Below, piece after piece: positions 37,861-45,133 of a stretch of DNA of 45,316 nucleotides; the stretch's first letter is position 1, and each line of letters starts with the position of its first letter. The stretch is from NCBI RefSeq assembly GCF_000315625.1, contig NW_005434590.1, positions 364,786 to 410,101 on the forward strand. The letters run 5' to 3'. Source of the DNA: Guillardia theta CCMP2712. Its lineage: Eukaryota > Protista > Cryptophyta. The notes below the pieces were generated by a model. It saw only the letters and a list, made by a program, of their open reading frames with translations. It did no database searches and was not told where the DNA came from. Position numbers and translations under genes: made by a program.

Positions 37861-39351
37861 ATGCGGTGCTACGGCCTAAGAGGTCTTCTCTTGCTCGCTA
37901 GTGGGGCATGCGGCTTGTTGGTGTACAGAAAGCTGCGACATGCAGCAAGACACTTGACGAGCTTGTCTCGATGGCTCCTTCCTTCCATGTTTGCTCGACA
38001 TATCCGCGCATTGGCGGCTGACAACGGGGAGCCTTGCGTGCTTGACGTGTCGCCATCCAATGTTGGGTTGTTTCGAAGAGGAGGAGCTGCGATGATCGGT
38101 AAGGATCTGAGAGCTTCTGGTCTTCCAGCACATGTCTGTGACTTCGTGGAATGTTTGCTTGTTGCGAGAGGAGCTGACCAAGCATTTAGAACCAAGACTG
38201 AGTTGATCAACTACAAGAAGGTAGAGACCATGCGGGTGTTGCCCTCCTTTGTTGAATATTTCCTTCAGGTCATACAGCACATGCAGAAGAACATGGAGAA
38301 ACTTGAGGCCGAGCTCAGCGTTCTGGCCGCTATTGCATACGCAGCTGAGGAAGACCCAGACGTCCATCCTCGTCCACGACGTTTTCAAAAGATTGCTCAG
38401 AAGCTCGACGAGTGCCGTGGAAGTCTGCATGTGCTGCGAGATGTTCGCACTTGGACGGCAGCCATCTGTAAGGTCTCAAGATTTCCAAGTGACGAGCGCA
38501 TGTTTGTGGCTGGAGACGCATTCATTTCGCGTTTGCCTGCAGCAATGAGCGAGCAAGGGGGGCTGAACTTTCGCCTGCGCTCTCTATCGAGGTTTGTGCA
38601 GGACAGCAAGGAGGAGTCACTGCAAGTGATCCAAAGGCTCGGCTGGCCTCCATCTGCCACCTTCACACAAGAAGGGAAGCACCTATGTAGAGTCTGCAAG
38701 AAAGGGTTCGGCAGAAAGTGGATCAAGCGAAGCATCTGCTGGAAGTGCGAGAGTGACAGCAGAGATCAGGGTCGATGCCCATACGAGGACGGAAACTTGT
38801 GCTATGTATGTCCTCACCTTCGAGCTTGCCTTCTGTGCGAGCGTCTTCCATGTATGCATTGCAGGATGGTGCACTCGGAGGACATGGCAGAAGATGTTTC
38901 ATCCTTCGTGCAGGAGTTGAATCCAGACGTACTGATCGTAGACTTCGATCAAACTCTATGTGAGACAAGAAGCGGCTGTGCCCCAGTAGTTGATAAGCAT
39001 GCCATGAACAGCGACATTAGCAATGCCATCAAGTGCCGACCAACCAAACGAAATGTCATCCTCACAAGGCAAAACTTCAAGAATGAGCCGACCATCAAAA
39101 GGTACCTCGACCAAATGGGAATGAAGAATGTAGAGATTCGCTGTATAGGAGGCAAACGTAACGCAAAAGGAGAGAAGATGAGCAAGTCGGATATGATGCT
39201 CGATCTTGTACCATGCGGATCAGTTCTTTTCATTGATGATGACCTACGAGAGCTGATGGCAAGGGAGATAGCTCAATGTGATAGAATTACGCGTTTACTC
39301 TTCTTCTCTTCGAGATGGGATGTGAAACATCATCATAATCTTCAAGCCTGA
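37861..39351 (+). CDS. Hypothetical 496-aa protein: N-terminal membrane anchor, Cys-rich zinc-binding region, C-terminal HAD-like phosphatase domain; intronless
   Basis: Hydrophobic GLLLLASGACGLLVY; CRVC..CWKC..CPY..CYVCPH..CLLC..CMHC; HAD motif I VDFDQT, motif II ILTR, motif III K, motif IV LFIDDD. Confidence 0.85.
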   Translation: MRCYGLRGLLLLASGACGLLVYRKLRHAARHLTSLSRWLLPSMFARHIRALAADNGEPCVLDVSPSNVGLFRRGGAAMIGKDLRASGLPAHVCDFVECLLVARGADQAFRTKTELINYKKVETMRVLPSFVEYFLQVIQHMQKNMEKLEAELSVLAAIAYAAEEDPDVHPRPRRFQKIAQKLDECRGSLHVLRDVRTWTAAICKVSRFPSDERMFVAGDAFISRLPAAMSEQGGLNFRLRSLSRFVQDSKEESLQVIQRLGWPPSATFTQEGKHLCRVCKKGFGRKWIKRSICWKCESDSRDQGRCPYEDGNLCYVCPHLRACLLCERLPCMHCRMVHSEDMAEDVSSFVQELNPDVLIVDFDQTLCETRSGCAPVVDKHAMNSDISNAIKCRPTKRNVILTRQNFKNEPTIKRYLDQMGMKNVEIRCIGGKRNAKGEKMSKSDMMLDLVPCGSVLFIDDDLRELMAREIAQCDRITRLLFFSSRWDVKHHHNLQA

Positions 39352-39450
39352 CATTTTACTTCATAGTCTCATTAACTTCTATAAAATGATTAACCTTCAT
39401 AGCTAGTATACAATGTTGAATATTCAGTGCTCAAGACTCGAACGCCTGAA

Positions 39451-42400
39451 TCAATCCTGGGATCGAAATTTCTGACTTGAGCCCAATACTATCCGCCTGT
39501 TGCAAAACAATATGAGTTGGTGTGGTGAACAATGAAGAACTTCAACGTCTTTCGTCATTGAGACCTCCCGATGTGTCTCTGTGCTTAGAAGATCTTCGGC
39601 TGAGTAAGAATTGAGAATCATCTTCGAATCCTTCTGTGCCTTTACCTTTTCTTGAGCCATACGTTGCCCTCGTAAGCACTCCGGGGGCGTAAGATTTCGA
39701 TGTCTTGCCTTTCATGAGGTAAGAAAGACGACTTAATTGCATATGCATTGACTACTTCGCCTACGGAAAATTTGAACGGCCTCCTGGAACAACATCGTTA
39801 CATTCATCTGAAATCTGAGGAGGGAAAAGATACTCACAGCATTCGGCGATTCACTGCTCAAAAGCTCAACTTTCTTTTCTAATCTGTCCATGTGCTCGAA
39901 GATTTCAAGTTTTGCTGAGAGTGTAAGAATTAGATTCACCCAAACAACCAAAGCAATTGCTCACTTTGCTCCAAGTGCATTCTCATCACAGGGGCAGTCA
40001 GTTCCGAGCGATTGACTGCACTCTTAGGGCCTGGATAGCTCTCAGACGCTAAGACGAAGATGCAGAATTTTGCCTATCACTAATTTTGTGACAATCTGTT
40101 CGAAATGCTCTTCTGTGAGTCGAGGTTTCATTTCCTCTTCATCGCAGATCTCCTGACAAGTGTTCAGCCCCTGTTGAGCCAATTTCAAGCTGTTTACATC
40201 TTCAAATGAATTTTCGACTGACTCATAGAAGAACCTGAACCAGAAGCAGTCAGGTCAAGGTTCCGGAACTTGCGTCACTGGTGGAGCACATTTGCACATC
40301 CCGATCACTCAATTCTTGGCCAAGCCCTCGGAAGAAATCAAGGATTTCCTCCACGTCAACAAAACCATCTTGGTTTGAATCAACTTCTTTGAAAAGCTTC
40401 CTCGCACCATCGCGCAGATCCTTCTGACTGCATGCAGAAGATTCCAAGATAGATATCATCTTTCATCTCTCACATTCAGCGTAGCAAGCACCTGAACTTC
40501 AATCCCAGTCCCATCGATCTGAGCAGACCAAATCGAATTCGTGACTGCTTGATCTCATTCCAGTAATGCCTACGCAAGGAAGGTTGTTAGACAGTTTTGT
40601 ATGTTGTAACCAAGGTTACCAGATAACGAAAAGTCCCCATAACACCATGAAGATTCCGAGACCAATCATGTAGATTATGCACCATCGCATCAACTACGAA
40701 TCATGTCAGAACAATAATTGATTGAACGATGAACTTGCCGCTTTATCAAAACGATCAATGTAGGTACTGGGGGTTGTTTTCACTGATGCCTTGAGCCACT
40801 TCTGACAAACAATCAGGAGTGAGTTATGATCAATATAGTTGATCTTAAGCGTCATTGCACACACTTCAAGCAAAAGCTTGTAATTGAGCTCTCCAGTCCC
40901 GTACATCAAGTCGGATTGCGCCACTTGCACGAGATGATAAACTTTGTCGACGTCGTAGCCTGGACGGCCGATGGCAATCACTCTTGGTCGATGTTCGAAC
41001 ACGTCTCCGACTTGGATCAGGTTATTGTCTTTGAATGTCGGATCATTTTGAAGCAACCATCTACAACACATGTGAGAGGCTTTTTCTGAGGCCCGTGGGT
41101 AGAAATTTGAGCGACATACCGGACAGTCCAAGTCTCATCAACTGCCACATCAATGGTTTGATTGACCAACGCAGACAGCAGATTTGTCACATTTTCATAC
41201 ACAAGCACAGTGGAGTTCAAGAGTTGCTGCGACAGCGAGGATCATTATAGCGAGTACACGGGAAGCACCTACTTGCTCTAAAAAGTGCTTGGCAATGACA
41301 GAAGAGGTTCCAAGGCGATATCCGTCGAGATCTGTAACTTTCTGAATTTGCAATAATTTGTCCGCAGGCGGAAGATAGCTCAGGTTTTGGGAGTTGACGA
41401 AAGTCGAAGTGACTGCTGCTCCGAACATTCCGACACAGTATGTCCCAGCAAACATCCAAGCGATGGTCAAAATTTTTCCCTGCACAGTTACTGGAACTTT
41501 ATCGCCATATCCAACAGTCATGGCTGTTACTATCCCTAGCCACCATGAGTCAAATACGCCAGGTCCTGGATTTCATTCAATCAAATCTTCAGAATCAGAA
41601 TATGGCCTCACCATAATATTTGTTTATATTTGGATTGTCCTTTCTCTCAACAATCCAAATCAAATGGGCAAAGATGATTGAAAGAATAACTAATAAAAGC
41701 AACGAAAATAGAGCCCACGCGTTTGATGTTCCAAATGCCTGTTGCCTTAAAGCGAGATCAAAGCTTGTATCAAGATGGAAGCTGCTGGGTTCTTACAGCA
41801 CGGTCATTCCGTCAATGGGAGAGTCTTGCTTAATAACGACCCCTTGGTACCCTGTCACCGGCTTAACATGATCTTGTTTGAACCGCTTCATTACCTGCGG
41901 TCGCATATGGAAGACTGAAATCTACAAAATTGCTGAGGTCCAAATCTACTTGTATAGCACAAAACTGTACAACATATCAGATCAAAGGTAATTCACCTCA
42001 GACTTACAGCAATGTCATAGAGTTGTTGTTTCAGCTGTTGTAAAAGAGCTTTCTGTGGCATGACCTAGCAGCGGCGCAGGGATTAGATGCAAGGACGTCG
42101 GAGCATCGCATTTACAGTAACAACAGGGGGTTGACGGAGAACATTCCTAAGGTCCTCAGAAACGTTTGAGACTCCAGCCAGTCTCCTCATGTTCTCTAGT
42201 AGAGCCTGCACACACATCAAATGCATGACCTTGCTGCTCCTCTTCCTTCTTGTCCTATCTGCTTCCCACAATCGCCCTTGGGTCGTTCTCCTCTCCCATC
42301 CGCCGGTTGTCAATCATGTGCACTTACGCTCCAGTATTCGACATCCAGCCCCGTCAGCCCTCCCGTCTCGTTTCTAAGAACATAAGGTGCCCTATCTCCG

Positions 42401-42563
42401 TCACAGAACGCCACCTGCACTCGATGTCAGCAATCTTGCTTAATTCAGCAGAGAATACCTTCAACGGCTGGGCCTGTGCCCGAACAAGCCATGCAGAACA
42501 AAGAATCAGCAGAAGCACGCTGAGAATTTTCTGCATCAAAGATACTCCGCATTTTGTCTGCAT
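39451..42563 (-). CDS. GluR0-like ligand-gated K+ channel (iGluR superfamily) with M4 helix and EF-hand; 3' end approximate
   Basis: Signal peptide MQKILSVLLLILCSAWLVRAQA; S1 VAFCDGDRAPYV..TGLDVEYW..YDIAFCAI..VDFSLPY; M1 AWALFSLLLLVILSIIFAHLIWIVER; pore DSWWLGIVTAMTVGYGDKVP (TVGYGD at 41501-41518); M3 GKILTIAWMFAGTYCVGMFGAAVTS; S2 ..DVAVDETWTV..; M4 WCIIYMIGLGIFMVLWGLFVIW; EF loop DSNQDGFVDVEE (40346-40381). Confidence 0.88.
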
Positions 42564-43020
42564 GTTGCAATGATACAATTTCAACAGCATTTCATCTGTG
42601 GAGAAAATCAATACACTTAAATGCAGATGCTAAGTGTCTGTGTATAGATCTGCATTTGATTATACGCCTTTGCTGCTAGCAATCTATTTACCTCTTCTCT
42701 TGTGCCCATCGCTGTTTCCAGTTGCACCCTGTGGGGATTAAAACGGAACTCACTCATTTTAAAAGGATATTTGAGTGTGTACTGAGGGGTAGAAATCTAT
42801 CCCCGCATATAATGATAGTAGCGAGATTGAAGCAGTGAGTATACAATTGAGGGTTGTAGCGTTTTATAATGATGCTGGGGTGGTGACCGTTCGGTTGGCT
42901 AAATAGAGGTGACTTCTATTTTCCTGGTACTAACTTTAGTCATCATGCCCAGCACTGTATTTTATTGGAGCACCGTCAACTGGTTTAGGACCCCTCCCGT
43001 AAACATCCAAATCACAGATC

Positions 43021-43040
43021 AGGGTTTAGTTAGGGTTTAG
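43021..43040 (+). repeat. Short interstitial telomere-type stub AGGGTTTAGTTAGGGTTTAG
   Basis: TTTAGGG/TTAGGG-like units, same orientation as the terminal array. Confidence 0.6.
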
Positions 43041-45133
43041 GAGCGCCGGTTATTCCCGGCAGGCCGCCGCAGCGGCCGCCGCCGGGTTATTCTGGGCATC
43101 ATCATGGCATGGCAGTGCGAGTATGGGAAGCCGCCCGGCCAGGGCGCGACTCTCAGGGCTCGGAACAAAAAAGACTCCGAGAATATCATAGTATGCCGAT
43201 TAGCGGCGCTTCTCAACTCAGGAGAAGCTGGATTTCTCTCCGAAGATACAATCCTCGAGGCAACTTGAGACAGATTTCAAGTAGCATGCTCTGCTCCCTC
43301 CTCTGATTTACTTCAGTGGTCTCAGTCTTCCCCTGCCTTAGCCAGTGGCGTTTCCTCCGCCGGCCTTGGCCTGGGTCGTCCGTGCTTTACTTGTGTTGCT
43401 TCCTCGGCTCCGACACACCGGGCCTTGGCGGTCTCGGCCGGCCTTCGGCCGCAGTGAGTGGATGATGGATGGGGTGGCAAGTGGGTTGTGGATGGGTCCC
43501 TGGGACTCACGTCCCTTCCCCCCGGCGGGCCTCGGTCCGGACCGGGCCCGGGAGCCCGGCCGGCCTCCGCCCGGCCTCCTCCCCCGGGCCGCCTCCCCCT
43601 CCCCCCTCCCCCACCGGCTTACCTGCCCTTACCTTCGTTGCTTGCCCCATGTCCACCTCATTTATTTCTTCCTCCTTCCCCCCTTGGGGCCCACAGCTCC
43701 GCTCCGCCTCAAGTCCACCTCTAAGACTTGACTCGAGCCTCAAGCGCGAGAGAGGCCTGCGCCAGCCTCCTCCTCCACGCCCTCGCCCTCCTCAGCCTCC
43801 ATGTCGACTTCCTCCCTCATCATCAGCCGCAGTCGGTCTTGCTTGTCGACCTTGCCCGTGCAGCTCAACCCATGGTGCTCAGCAAATTTACTGATCGCAA
43901 GAAACAAGAGGCTTACAGATCGACTCTCGATGTCATCGCTCTCAGCCTCCTGCTCGAGCGCATCAGTCGCTGCTGCCCTTGGAGAGAAGGCGCTGCCCCT
44001 CCCCGCTGCTTGCGTGACCTTCTTGTTCCCTTGCACCCGTGTCCAGCGCTGCTCGCCGAGGTATGCTCTGAGCTTTTCTTTCAACATGTTTCGCTTCGAT
44101 CCCAACGTCGGCGTGGCTGCCCAAGCTCCGAGCGTCATGAACTCCACGTTGCCCGGCGAGCAGAAGGTGTCATGCAGCTTCCCAACACTCTTGTCTAGCT
44201 CCAGAGAGATCGGCTTGCCAGCTAGCAGCTCCTCCTCTGATGTCTCCAAGAGCATCGACGAGAGGTCGCTTAACATGACGGGACCGATCCTGGCCCTGAN
44301 NNNNNNNNNNNNNNNNNNNNNNNNNNNNNNNNNNNNNNNNNNNNNNNNNNNNNNNNNNNNNNNNNNNNNNNNNNNNNNNNNNNNNNNNNNNNNNNNNNNG
44401 ACGCTGCTTCCCATGGTGATCCTGTCGATGTCGCTGAGCTCCAGCCATCCAGCGCCTTGCTGCTGCCCTTGGGGGTCCTGAGCTTGCTCCTCGCTCTCCT
44501 CTTCCTCCTGAGAGCTGACAGTGGGTTTGAACCCCACCGCCTCCAGCTTGACTTCCAGGATCCCTTCCAAGTAGAAGGGCATGTCTTCCATCAAGCGTCG
44601 AGCCTCTGCCTTGGTCGCCAGGGAGAGAGCTATCAGGCTCCCATCCCAGCTGAGCGTGTCACGATCTTCCTCGACCTCGACGCTGACCAGCTTGAGGTTC
44701 ATTCTTCTTGCTAACTCCAACATGGCTCGCTTGACTCTCGTGATCGATGTGTTACCTCCTCCGCACAGCGCTTCCATCTCCTTCCTCGAGAAGCGGCCTG
44801 TGCTCATGCTTGACCTAGACTTGATCTGTACTCTAAAGCTGCTGCGCCCCGCATGATCTCTCTCGCGAAGTGCCTTCCTCTGCTGGGCAATCTTTCCCCT
44901 CGGCACGAAGGTGTCGGCTGTGAGCTCGACTGCAAACGTCTCTCTGAGCTTGGCGTCGTTGCTGATGAGAGTGAGATGCACCCCCTCCATCGCCTCGCTC
45001 TCTCTGAACGAGGCCAAGGTCTGCTCGCAACTTGCCGTCGAAGGCGAGCTCAGCATCCACTCCAGCTCTTTTTGCTGGAGAGTTCCCGTACTTGCCCCAA
45101 CAGCAACATACGTCTTCGGTTTAGGATTAAGGG
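43041..45133 (-). mobile_element. Putative decayed non-LTR retroelement (ORF1-like plus degenerate ORF2 start) between telomere-type repeats
   Basis: Long intronless ORF open up to the terminal repeats, followed by frameshifted GC-rich sequence and MLLEICLKLPRGLYLRREIQLLLS*EAPLIGIL* (ATG 43287), loosely like the start of an AP endonuclease. No RT seen. Confidence 0.35.
43740..45119 (-). CDS. Intronless hypothetical ORF of about 460 codons (gap 44300-44399 inside), 5' end abuts telomere-type repeats
   Basis: ORF 43740-45056 stays open upstream (PKTYVAVGASTGTLQQKELEW) until the TAA at 45137 inside the repeats; protein-like composition; frame across the gap not verifiable. Confidence 0.65.
   Translation of the reverse strand, partial: PKTYVAVGASTGTLQQKELEWMLSSPSTASCEQTLASFRESEAMEGVHLTLISNDAKLRETFAVELTADTFVPRGKIAQQRKALRERDHAGRSSFRVQIKSRSSMSTGRFSRKEMEALCGGGNTSITRVKRAMLELARRMNLKLVSVEVEEDRDTLSWDGSLIALSLATKAEARRLMEDMPFYLEGILEVKLEAVGFKPTVSSQEEEESEEQAQDPQGQQQGAGWLELSDIDRITMGSSVXXXXXXXXXXXXXXXXXXXXXXXXXXXXXXXXXXRARIGPVMLSDLSSMLLETSEEELLAGKPISLELDKSVGKLHDTFCSPGNVEFMTLGAWAATPTLGSKRNMLKEKLRAYLGEQRWTRVQGNKKVTQAAGRGSAFSPRAAATDALEQEAESDDIESRSVSLLFLAISKFAEHHGLSCTGKVDKQDRLRLMMREEVDMEAEEGEGVEEEAGAGLSRA

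Follow-up and report, generated by a model that had tools for sequence, protein, structure and literature searches.

Introduction

In the literature that we searched, reviews published between 2012 and 2025 name only two ionotropic glutamate receptors (iGluRs) with the selectivity filter of a potassium channel, GluR0 and AvGluR1 (PMC3483616, PMC11479355, PMC12332018). GluR0 (Synechocystis slr1257), in common with bacterial receptors of its type, has no amino-terminal domain (ATD), and the S1 and S2 halves of its clamshell-like ligand-binding domain (LBD) are split by an inverted K+ pore with a TxVGYG filter. The GluR0 chain ends after S2, with neither a fourth membrane helix (M4) nor a cytosolic domain (PMC11479355, PMC12332018). 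AvGluR1, found in Adineta vaga, a rotifer, is a eukaryotic iGluR in which M4 is combined with a filter signature of the K+-channel type (PMC11479355, PMC12332018, PMC3483616). The subject of this paper is a gene of the cryptophyte Guillardia theta CCMP2712 that combines a K+ filter and M4 with a putative cytosolic calcium sensor of the EF-hand type. It lies on the minus strand of a 45,316-nucleotide stretch of contig NW_005434590.1 (positions 364,786 to 410,101 of the forward strand, assembly GCF_000315625.1), hereafter called the window, to which all coordinates refer unless another sequence is named.

Two further groups of channels bear on the comparison. Plant GLR3.x proteins and animal AMPA and NMDA receptors share with the protein described here the fold of the LBD and transmembrane domain (TMD), including a helix after S2, but they have an ATD, lack a K+ filter and are gated through a SYTANLAAF motif. 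Calcium feedback on the animal receptors is provided by a separate calmodulin, which acts on the C0 segment of GluN1, and not by a built-in EF-hand. Plant two-pore channels of the TPK1/KCO1 type and calmodulin-gated SK channels resemble the present protein in that a K+ pore is followed by a cytosolic EF-hand or calmodulin-lobe sensor; they differ in the normal orientation of the pore, in the absence of an extracellular ligand-binding domain, and in that the EF-hands directly follow the inner helix, with no separate M4.

In a broad phylogeny of eukaryotic iGluRs there is no mention of EF-hands, nor of K+ filters beyond bacteria (PMC12226733), and a survey of diatom Ca2+ channels merely counts the glutamate receptor-like proteins (PMC11085791). 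In the literature that we searched, no paper pairs an iGluR with Guillardia, and among the matches listed for 'Guillardia' with 'glutamate receptor' there was only optogenetics. A conserved design of K+ filter, M4 and EF-hand is likewise not described in that literature, although algal GluR0-like sequences were possibly tabulated by De Bortoli et al. 2016 (Biophys Chem). A preliminary description of this locus, made from the sequence alone, had stated that no characterised iGluR with this architecture was known, and our searches agree with it.

Gene structure and transcription

The gene has 22 exons, and its coding sequence (CDS; 39431-42563, minus strand; 671 codons plus stop) begins with an ATG at 42563 and ends with a stop codon at 39433-39431. 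The preliminary description gave the same start; its end, at 39451, has to be moved 20 bases further to include the stop codon. The gene was first modelled from the three minus-strand reading frames by joining exons at GT/GC-AG sites, and public sequencing runs were aligned to positions 38800-43100 (4301 letters) of the window. Contigs from three runs taken as RNA and belonging to three studies (X1, X2 and X10) match the locus at 99% or better, span 42721-39341 and skip exactly the predicted introns, 15 of the 21 introns being directly listed as joints. The exons run 42563-42459, 42414-42328, 42205-42116, 42064-42008, 41964-41895, 41851-41797, 41745-41612 and 41565-41273 (exons 1-8); 41226-41120, 41060-40865, 40801-40739, 40693-40620, 40569-40492, 40427-40290 and 40234-40198 (exons 9-15); and 40152-40074, 40030-39965, 39914-39838, 39783-39756, 39708-39646, 39599-39547 and 39496-39431 (exons 16-22). 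The listed joints have CT..AC ends on the plus strand, that is GT..AG on the minus strand, with the sole exception of 40693/40739 (CT..GC). This joint, present in contigs of all three runs, defines a GC-AG intron (40694-40738, minus strand, donor GCAAGT) just before the M4 exon.

The exons for the pore, S2, M4 and the EF-hand stand together with the 3' end of the gene on each of two contigs, X10 record 7 (2086 nt) and X2 record 8 (3678 nt). These bridging contigs contain the M4 joints 40693/40739 and 40568/40619 as well as the EF-hand exon, so that the pore, S2, M4 and EF-hand exons form one spliced mRNA, and the M4 and EF-hand exons are not a separate gene, an outcome that the preliminary description had named as fatal to its proposal.

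The remaining six introns were deduced from contig coverage, counted as covered bases per 144-base bin, and from the length of contig between anchored pieces (402 nt from 40232 to 39496). Coverage and length together pick five introns (40197-40153, 40073-40031, 39964-39915, 39837-39784 and 39755-39709), and the sixth, 39546-39497, was placed from a loose read end at 39496 in X17, a 2026 RNA-seq run. One of the five, 40031-40073, appears from coverage and from the proteins P0153 and P0151 to be a second GC-AG intron (donor GCAAAA). In the 3' third of the gene, enumeration of splice sites alone gives hundreds of solutions; the choice among them was settled by bin coverage and by two database proteins that read exactly across the deduced junctions, namely P0153 (partial, from the same gene) and the orthologue P0151. 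A third, the MMETSP protein P0152, matches the gene model over residues 1 to about 515. The transcribed unit extends over 39336-42721 (minus strand), its 5' untranslated region reaching at least to 42721 and its poly(A) site lying at about 39336-39341, where raw 3'-biased reads of X17 have poly(T) loose ends (before 39336 and 39341) that indicate a poly(A) tail on the minus-strand mRNA.

Domain organization

The protein consists, in order, of a signal peptide, S1, M1, a pore helix with the filter TVGYGD, M3, S2, M4, a basic post-M4 helix, a pair of EF-hands and a long helix. Transcripts, Pfam, two AlphaFold models and fold searches agree with the series of parts, from signal peptide to EF-hand, that had been read from this intron-rich gene in the preliminary description. 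The signal peptide (residues 1-31; 42471-42563, minus strand, as are all features of the protein) has the core ILSVLLLILCSAWLV followed by AQA; its hydropathy is 2.12 over residues 9-27, and residues 10-24 are modelled as a helix. The first S1 strand, residues 35-39, directly follows it, and no match to the Pfam family ANF_receptor was found, confirming that there is no ATD. S1 (residues 33-150; 41811-42467) is spread over several exons and is identified by the Pfam family SBP_bac_3 and by profile alignment to bacterial binding proteins and to the Nostoc GluR0 ligand-binding core 2pyy. M1 follows at residues 164-188 (41646-41720), and then the pore helix and K+ filter at residues 199-221 (41501-41615), a segment that spans the intron 41566-41611 and matches Ion_trans_2 (E 2.5e-10). 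Within it TVGYGD forms residues 216-221 (41501-41518), and G-Y-G-D is invariant in the family described below. M3 comprises residues 227-258 (41390-41485), S2 residues 262-404 (40784-41380), the latter aligned by profile to binding proteins and matched by fold, and M4 residues 420-444 (40569-40693), spanning the intron 40570-40619.

Pfam scores on P0152 lie above the cut-offs for SBP_bac_3 (38.9 bits; cut-off 26.4), Ion_trans_2 (41.1 bits; 22.5) and Ion_trans (28.9 bits; 25). The closest sequences in the PDB to the segment from M1 to M3 are those of the K+ channels LmK (4h33), KvAP and KcsA (E 1e-9 to 1e-6). A profile of 36 family members, searched against the PDB, matches glutamine- and arginine-binding proteins in two stretches that flank the pore, and matches 2pyy with an E-value of 2.6e-23. 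The same profile aligns to full-length plant GLR3.4 (7lzh) in one stretch from S1 to beyond M4 (E 4.5e-22), and to GluN2C (8e92) from M3 to beyond M4.

The AlphaFold2 model of residues 1-515, built with the family alignment, has a mean predicted local distance difference test (pLDDT) value of 79.6 and shows, in sequence, a helix for the signal peptide, an alpha/beta domain of two lobes, M1 (164-188), a pore helix at 199-215, M3 (227-258), the other half of the clamshell, a long helix of pre-M4 and M4 (412-445), a further helix (447-462) and a helix-loop-helix (471-485/495-504). The LBD spans residues 30-404 of this model, with the TMD looped out. Foldseek places chains of the LBD and TMD of AMPA receptors (GluA1-4) at the top of its matches, with E-values of about 4e-17; the alignments extend over about 460 columns, the chains themselves having about 400 residues. 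When the clamshell (residues 30-404) was compared by VIA-align, the glutamine-binding protein (GlnBP) gave Z 25.8 (root-mean-square deviation 2.1 A over 221 residues) and the GluR0 cores gave Z 24.0 (2pyy) and Z 23.4 (1ii5). A search of the ESM Atlas by shape returned bacterial GluR0-type clusters for most of its matches, together with plant glutamate receptor-like proteins, arthropod iGluRs and a eukaryotic 'potassium channel domain' cluster. With an S1/S2 clamshell split by an M1-P-loop-M3 channel in one chain, the protein is a member of the iGluR superfamily.

Membrane topology and the EF-hand tail

Apart from the signal peptide, the hydropathy profile has peaks at M1 (2.80), M3 (1.55) and M4 (2.54). 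Six of the seven N-x-S/T sequons fall in S1, S2 or the linker between M3 and S2, and four of the 20 residues that follow M4 are Lys or Arg. Since S1 and S2 are outer or luminal in every iGluR and M4 crosses the membrane, the tail should lie in the cytosol, and the M4 peak, the sequons and the basic residues after M4 all point to cytosolic EF-hands. Plastid targeting was considered and set aside on sequence: the S1 strand directly follows the signal peptide, and there is no transit-peptide-like stretch.

The tail after M4 is 227 residues long. It opens with a basic amphipathic helix (residues 446-463, YWNEIKQSRIRFGLLRSM; 40512-40565) that is conserved in the family and is modelled as a helix both in the AlphaFold2 model (447-462) and in a separate model of the tail (its residues 2-19). 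EF-hand 1 (EF1; residues 471-504; 40325-40426) follows, with the 12-residue loop DSNQDGFVDVEE at 40346-40381. All canonical positions are occupied in this loop (D1, N3, D5, G6, a hydrophobic residue at 8 and E12), and many members of the family, as well as the Hanusia-like orthologue, have kept it. When the EF exon (40290-40427) was searched alone, EF-hand_7 (32.3 bits, E 1.3e-7) and EF-hand_1 (28.7 bits, E 7.4e-7) both exceeded their Pfam cut-offs; on the whole of P0152, EF-hand_7 scores 27.9 bits (cut-off 30).

The tail model, of residues 445-602, was built from P0153:137-294 with 12 aligned tails. Its mean pLDDT is 73, rising to about 92 in EF1, and it comprises the post-M4 helix, EF1, a helix with a long low-confidence loop and a second helix, and finally a helix of 29 residues. 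The preliminary description had recognised one EF-hand; EF1 is indeed canonical, and the model adds a second, non-canonical one (EF2; residues 511-554; 40075-40306), in which a helix, a long acidic loop and an exit helix (LTEEHFEQIVTKLV; tail-model helices 67-75 and 98-110) follow each other. Two short strands, at 49-50 and 95-96, lie one in each loop, as is found in paired EF-hands, and the best Foldseek matches of the tail model are single lobes of calmodulin and troponin C (TM score by target 0.67-0.78, E about 1e-2), including calmodulin lobes in complexes with SK, Cav and Kv7 channels. In the model, therefore, the paired EF-hands form one calmodulin-like lobe. The EF2 loop, over-long and acidic as modelled, probably does not bind Ca2+ in the standard way, which would leave one Ca2+ site in the lobe. 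The segment that had been called a coiled tail is predicted to be a single long helix (residues 569-597; 39853-39989; tail-model helix 125-153) with a motif that aligns in P0012, P0047, P0167 and P0025.

Ligand site

In GlnBP, GluR0 and iGluRs the carboxylate of the ligand is bound by the Arg in the segment 'T-I-T-x-E-R ... D-F-S'. Profile alignments place Leu123 (41935-41937) at the column that is occupied by this Arg in AncQR, GlnPQ and the GluR0 core 2pyy. The Hanusia-like orthologue likewise has Leu at this column, and Q, E, T, H or L occurs across the nearest subclade, while the sister subclade retains Arg (P0016, P0017, P0167, P0176, P0047 and P0025). Glu328 (41134-41136) occupies the place of the acidic residue by which the amino group of the ligand is bound, and D or E is found there in 33 of the 36 family sequences. 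With Leu123 in place of the carboxylate-binding Arg, it is improbable that the ligand is a canonically bound amino acid, and 'glutamate receptor' is used here as a family label that assigns no ligand. The missing Arg would point to an unknown class of agonist in marine algae.

Family and paralogues

A scan of 1.84 billion representative proteins with the pore exon, at a threshold of E 1e-10, returned 34 proteins, many of them with the same layout. Examples are P0003/P0161, P0155 (from Teleaulax amphioxeia), P0014, P0012, P0047, P0167 and P0025, and the EF loops found at the same place after M4 in relatives include DTDSSGTVSAFE, DVNRDGHLSVNE and DTNGDGGLDVEE. A word-indexed protein search with the family alignment found 12 proteins. 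Family members come from MMETSP, EukProt and marine metagenomes and metatranscriptomes, and the closest named relative is from Hanusia phi, of the same family Geminigeraceae. The Hanusia-like orthologue P0151 is a full-length protein of 648 residues with the same order of parts; its tail is 90% identical to that of G. theta, compared with 83-84% for the protein overall. The post-M4 helix, EF1, the exit helix of EF2 and the motif of the C-terminal helix align across distant members. The longer family members have a hydrophobic segment where M4 lies, and GluR0-like sequences of about 350-390 residues have none there.

A quick maximum-likelihood tree was made from 43 core regions; since it has neither a root nor organism names, we read no direction of evolution from it. 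The proteins with C-terminal EF-hands form one clade of 20 sampled sequences on a branch of length 1.07, with a support of 100 in the Shimodaira-Hasegawa-like approximate likelihood-ratio test. Four members of this clade scored as lacking M4 are truncated gene calls, and the GluR0-like sequences without M4 (342-392 residues) fall outside it. A second group with M4, in which the EF-hands are N-terminal, is separate in the tree, again with a support of 100. From these alignments the gene is seen to be a member of a conserved family and not a unique fusion, with a conserved layout of the tail, and the search for the same architecture in other algae that the preliminary description had advised has found it in Hanusia, in Teleaulax and in marine metatranscriptomes.

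The G. theta genome contains at least four more relatives with a K+ filter (C11, C41, C49 and C6). Three of these, at L003:799-2976 (minus strand; G000 C11), L002:27-2583 (plus strand; G000 C41) and L010:31-3134 (plus strand; G000 C49), share with the present gene the core of S1, M1, TVGYGD pore, M3, S2 and M4. They differ from it in being intron-poor, in having no C-terminal EF module and in that S1 is preceded, where an ATD would be, by arrays of EF-hand loops; they belong to the separate clade and cluster with the environmental proteins P0122, P0145 and P0053. The fourth, C6 (L013; G000 C6:330043-330460, minus strand), is an intron-rich paralogue with the pore exon ...VTMTTVGYGDKVPVT.... 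When the genome was searched with a profile of the tail, the matches outside the present gene had E-values of 2.7e-10 or weaker and are probably generic EF-hand proteins.

Several further observations concern the relatives. P0002 (EukProt, Hanusia phi), a protein derived from a transcript, differs from P0151 in that precisely the two exons for the pre-M4 linker and M4 are absent, four other residues standing in their place, with the EF tail in frame; it may be an isoform without M4, in which the tail would be on the other side of the membrane, or an assembly artefact. The homologue P0161 (589 residues, with M4 and a canonical EF loop) is encoded without introns on contigs of 50-116 kb from an intron-poor alga, among them a metagenome contig of 115,617 bases (L025:10001-11770), and adjoins a nuclear psbU and a large HECT/ankyrin gene. 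Two-pore K+ channels in which an EF-hand follows the second pore make up many of the database relatives of the pore (P0042, P0046, P0051, P0080, P0112 and others). The EF region of these channels can be aligned to that of the family profile, which hints that the combination of K+ pore and EF-hand recurs among protist channels. A feature search of the ESM Atlas, with scores below 0.9, returned eukaryotic clusters with Ion_trans_2 and Lig_chan whose known taxa are mostly 'Cnidaria', possibly representing dinoflagellate symbionts of Cnidaria, and also a Nucleocytoviricota cluster with SBP_bac_3 and Lig_chan-Glu_bd; all of these are to be taken as leads only.

Proposed function and alternative explanations

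We consider it probable that the product of this expressed gene, 671 residues long, is one subunit of a tetrameric channel of the iGluR superfamily, with a K+ pore, M4 and a cytosolic EF-hand lobe, and that the channel is tuned both by a ligand and by Ca2+. What the data support is the anatomy, from the gene and its single transcript to the domain order and folds, together with its conservation in the family. By analogy with GluR0, with K+ channels and with calmodulin acting on GluN1 and SK channels, we infer the following mechanism. The signal peptide would place the two-lobed clamshell of S1 and S2 on the outer or luminal side, and between its halves the chain would form an inverted K+-channel pore from M1, the pore helix, TVGYGD and M3. 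Because it has such a pore with TVGYGD, the channel should be K+ selective, as GluR0 is. M4 would then return the chain after S2 to the cytosol, where the basic helix, the EF-hand pair with its one canonical Ca2+ site and the long helix would lie. Closure of the clamshell on an external ligand would pull M3 and open the pore, while Ca2+ on EF1 would shift the EF lobe against the post-M4 helix and so tune gating, the lobe serving as a built-in version of the calmodulin that acts on the C0 segment of GluN1 or on SK channels. Integration of an external ligand with internal Ca2+, as the preliminary description had supposed, is a reasonable hypothesis.

A number of results weigh against such a channel or against parts of it. 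The Pfam family Lig_chan (PF00060), one of those in which the preliminary description had expected a match, stays below its cut-off of 30.8 (20.0 bits on P0152 and 20.7 on P0151), while SBP_bac_3, Ion_trans_2 and, for the exon alone, the EF-hand families are found as expected. M3 has no SYTANLAAF gate motif; it reads ...AGTYCVGMFGAAVTSTF..., in which only a pair of small residues and a Thr recall that motif. In these two respects and in its want of an ATD the protein is not a eukaryotic receptor of the Lig_chan type. A profile of the segment from pre-M4 to post-M4 gave only chance-level matches to transmembrane segments in the PDB and no iGluR M4; M4 is equivalent to that of iGluRs by position, and a common origin is a candidate explanation of this. 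The absence of the canonical ligand-binding Arg makes ligand gating itself uncertain. EF2 is non-canonical and is modelled at low confidence, and the EF loops of P0016, P0017 and P0176 are degenerate, so that Ca2+ binding does not extend to the whole clade. In the abundant MMETSP isoform P0152 the intron that follows the EF1 exon is kept, and the protein would end 13 residues further on. A complex prediction with four copies of the tail (P0153:137-294), aimed at assembly by way of the long helix or the EF lobes, gave a score of 0.08 (mark 0.32), a result that is evidence neither way.

The substitution at Leu123 is also the starting point for the strongest competing explanation, which we regard as unlikely though deserving of serious attention: that the clamshell no longer senses an agonist, being vestigial, structural or a binder without effect on the gate, and that the protein is mainly a Ca2+-regulated K+ channel gated from its EF module. 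The replacement of Arg throughout the nearest subclade, when the sister subclade keeps it, would be in keeping with this, as would the EF module, whose conservation is no lower than that of the remaining protein, and the EF-hand-bearing two-pore K+ channels among the sequence relatives of the pore. However, the clamshell fold is intact and confidently modelled, at Z 23-26 to ligand-bound binding proteins; the amino-group acid Glu328 is kept, S1/S2 scores above its Pfam cut-off, and one would expect a domain of this size, about 330 residues, to decay if it had no role.

Less probable again is that the EF-hand pair serves assembly, trafficking or anchoring, through subunit pairing or the binding of a partner, with Ca2+ having at most a structural part. 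Such a function would suit the non-canonical EF2, the several members in which canonical loop residues have been lost although the helices and the helix motif downstream persist, and the conserved long helix after the EF pair, since assembly domains of other tetrameric channels likewise have a long helix. Against it, the canonical ligands of EF1 (D1, N3, D5, G6 and E12) are kept in the orthologue and in distant members, and the module lies about 25 residues beyond a conserved basic amphipathic helix that directly extends M4, a position suited to acting on the gate. That a channel gene and a gene for a transmembrane and EF-hand protein were wrongly joined, or that the locus is a pseudogene, is very improbable, for although short-read contigs can join neighbours, and the X2 contig does enter the convergent neighbour, the joints 40801/40865, 40693/40739, 40568/40619 and 40427/40492 link the S2, M4 and EF exons in frame in three runs from three studies, the same order is found in P0151, in P0155 from Teleaulax and in many environmental sequences, and the reading frame is open across 22 exons.

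Comparison with described receptors and significance

A ligand- and Ca2+-tuned K+ channel of this kind would have its nearest described counterpart in GluR0, with which the protein shares the lack of an ATD, the clamshell split by an inverted K+ pore, the TxVGYG filter and the acid in S2, and whose cores, with GlnBP, are nearest to its LBD in fold. It departs from GluR0 in having M4 and a 227-residue tail with an EF-hand pair, in lacking the ligand-binding Arg and in being encoded by an intron-rich eukaryotic gene, and in the tree a long, fully supported branch sets it apart from the M4-less sequences of the GluR0 type. The designation 'GluR0-type' in the preliminary description is thus apt for the filter, the clamshell and the missing ATD, and inapt for M4, the tail and Leu123. 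AvGluR1, set against the protein here by its descriptions only, has the full eukaryotic layout with an ATD and no EF-hand in those descriptions; the G. theta protein, by contrast, has no ATD and has a predicted cytosolic EF-hand module.

We suggest, tentatively, that this may be the first natural channel of the iGluR superfamily to have a cytosolic Ca2+ sensor of its own; such a K+ channel would read an external chemical and internal Ca2+ together. Lacking an ATD and having a K+ filter and M4, it could be a living intermediate between bacterial GluR0 and the eukaryotic glutamate receptors; and, taken with the EF-hands on the outer side in its sister genes, it could mean that Ca2+ sensing has been wired into such channels on either face of the membrane in cryptophytes and other marine protists. 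A protist family with M4 and a K+ filter but no ATD bears on the stepwise assembly of the eukaryotic receptor. It may also bear on the first use of M4, which here would bring a regulatory domain into the cytosol. With the EF-hand lobe built in, Ca2+ feedback on a gate of the iGluR type would become open to test in one small polypeptide. The protein could also prove interesting as a compact K+ channel dependent on ligand and Ca2+, from an organism whose channelrhodopsins are already in wide use.

Transcript variants and flanking sequence

An in-frame ATG upstream of the assigned start, at 42590, adds the nine residues MLLKLYHCN and is used by the open reading frame (ORF) call of P0152; the signal peptide is present with either start, 42563 or 42590. 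A four-codon upstream ORF begins at 42595 (minus strand). P0152, which has 18 member sequences, retains the intron 40235-40289 after the EF1 exon and meets a stop 13 codons later, and the depth of the X1 contig falls about four-fold downstream of 40240, which suggests an abundant unspliced or alternative form without EF2 and the C-terminal helix. The 45-nt intron 40153-40197 lies in frame inside the EF2 loop, and its retention would insert 15 residues and leave the frame intact.

Downstream, a convergent neighbour on the plus strand (37861-39351), an intron-less ORF of 496 residues, overlaps the poly(A) site of the channel gene by about 10-15 bases, and the X2 contig continues through the channel gene into it. 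On the other side, telomere-type repeats (CCCTAAA units) occur at about 43020-43045, some 300 bases upstream of the 5' end of the transcript, and are adjoined by a GC-rich stretch (GC 0.62 in 43001-44000).

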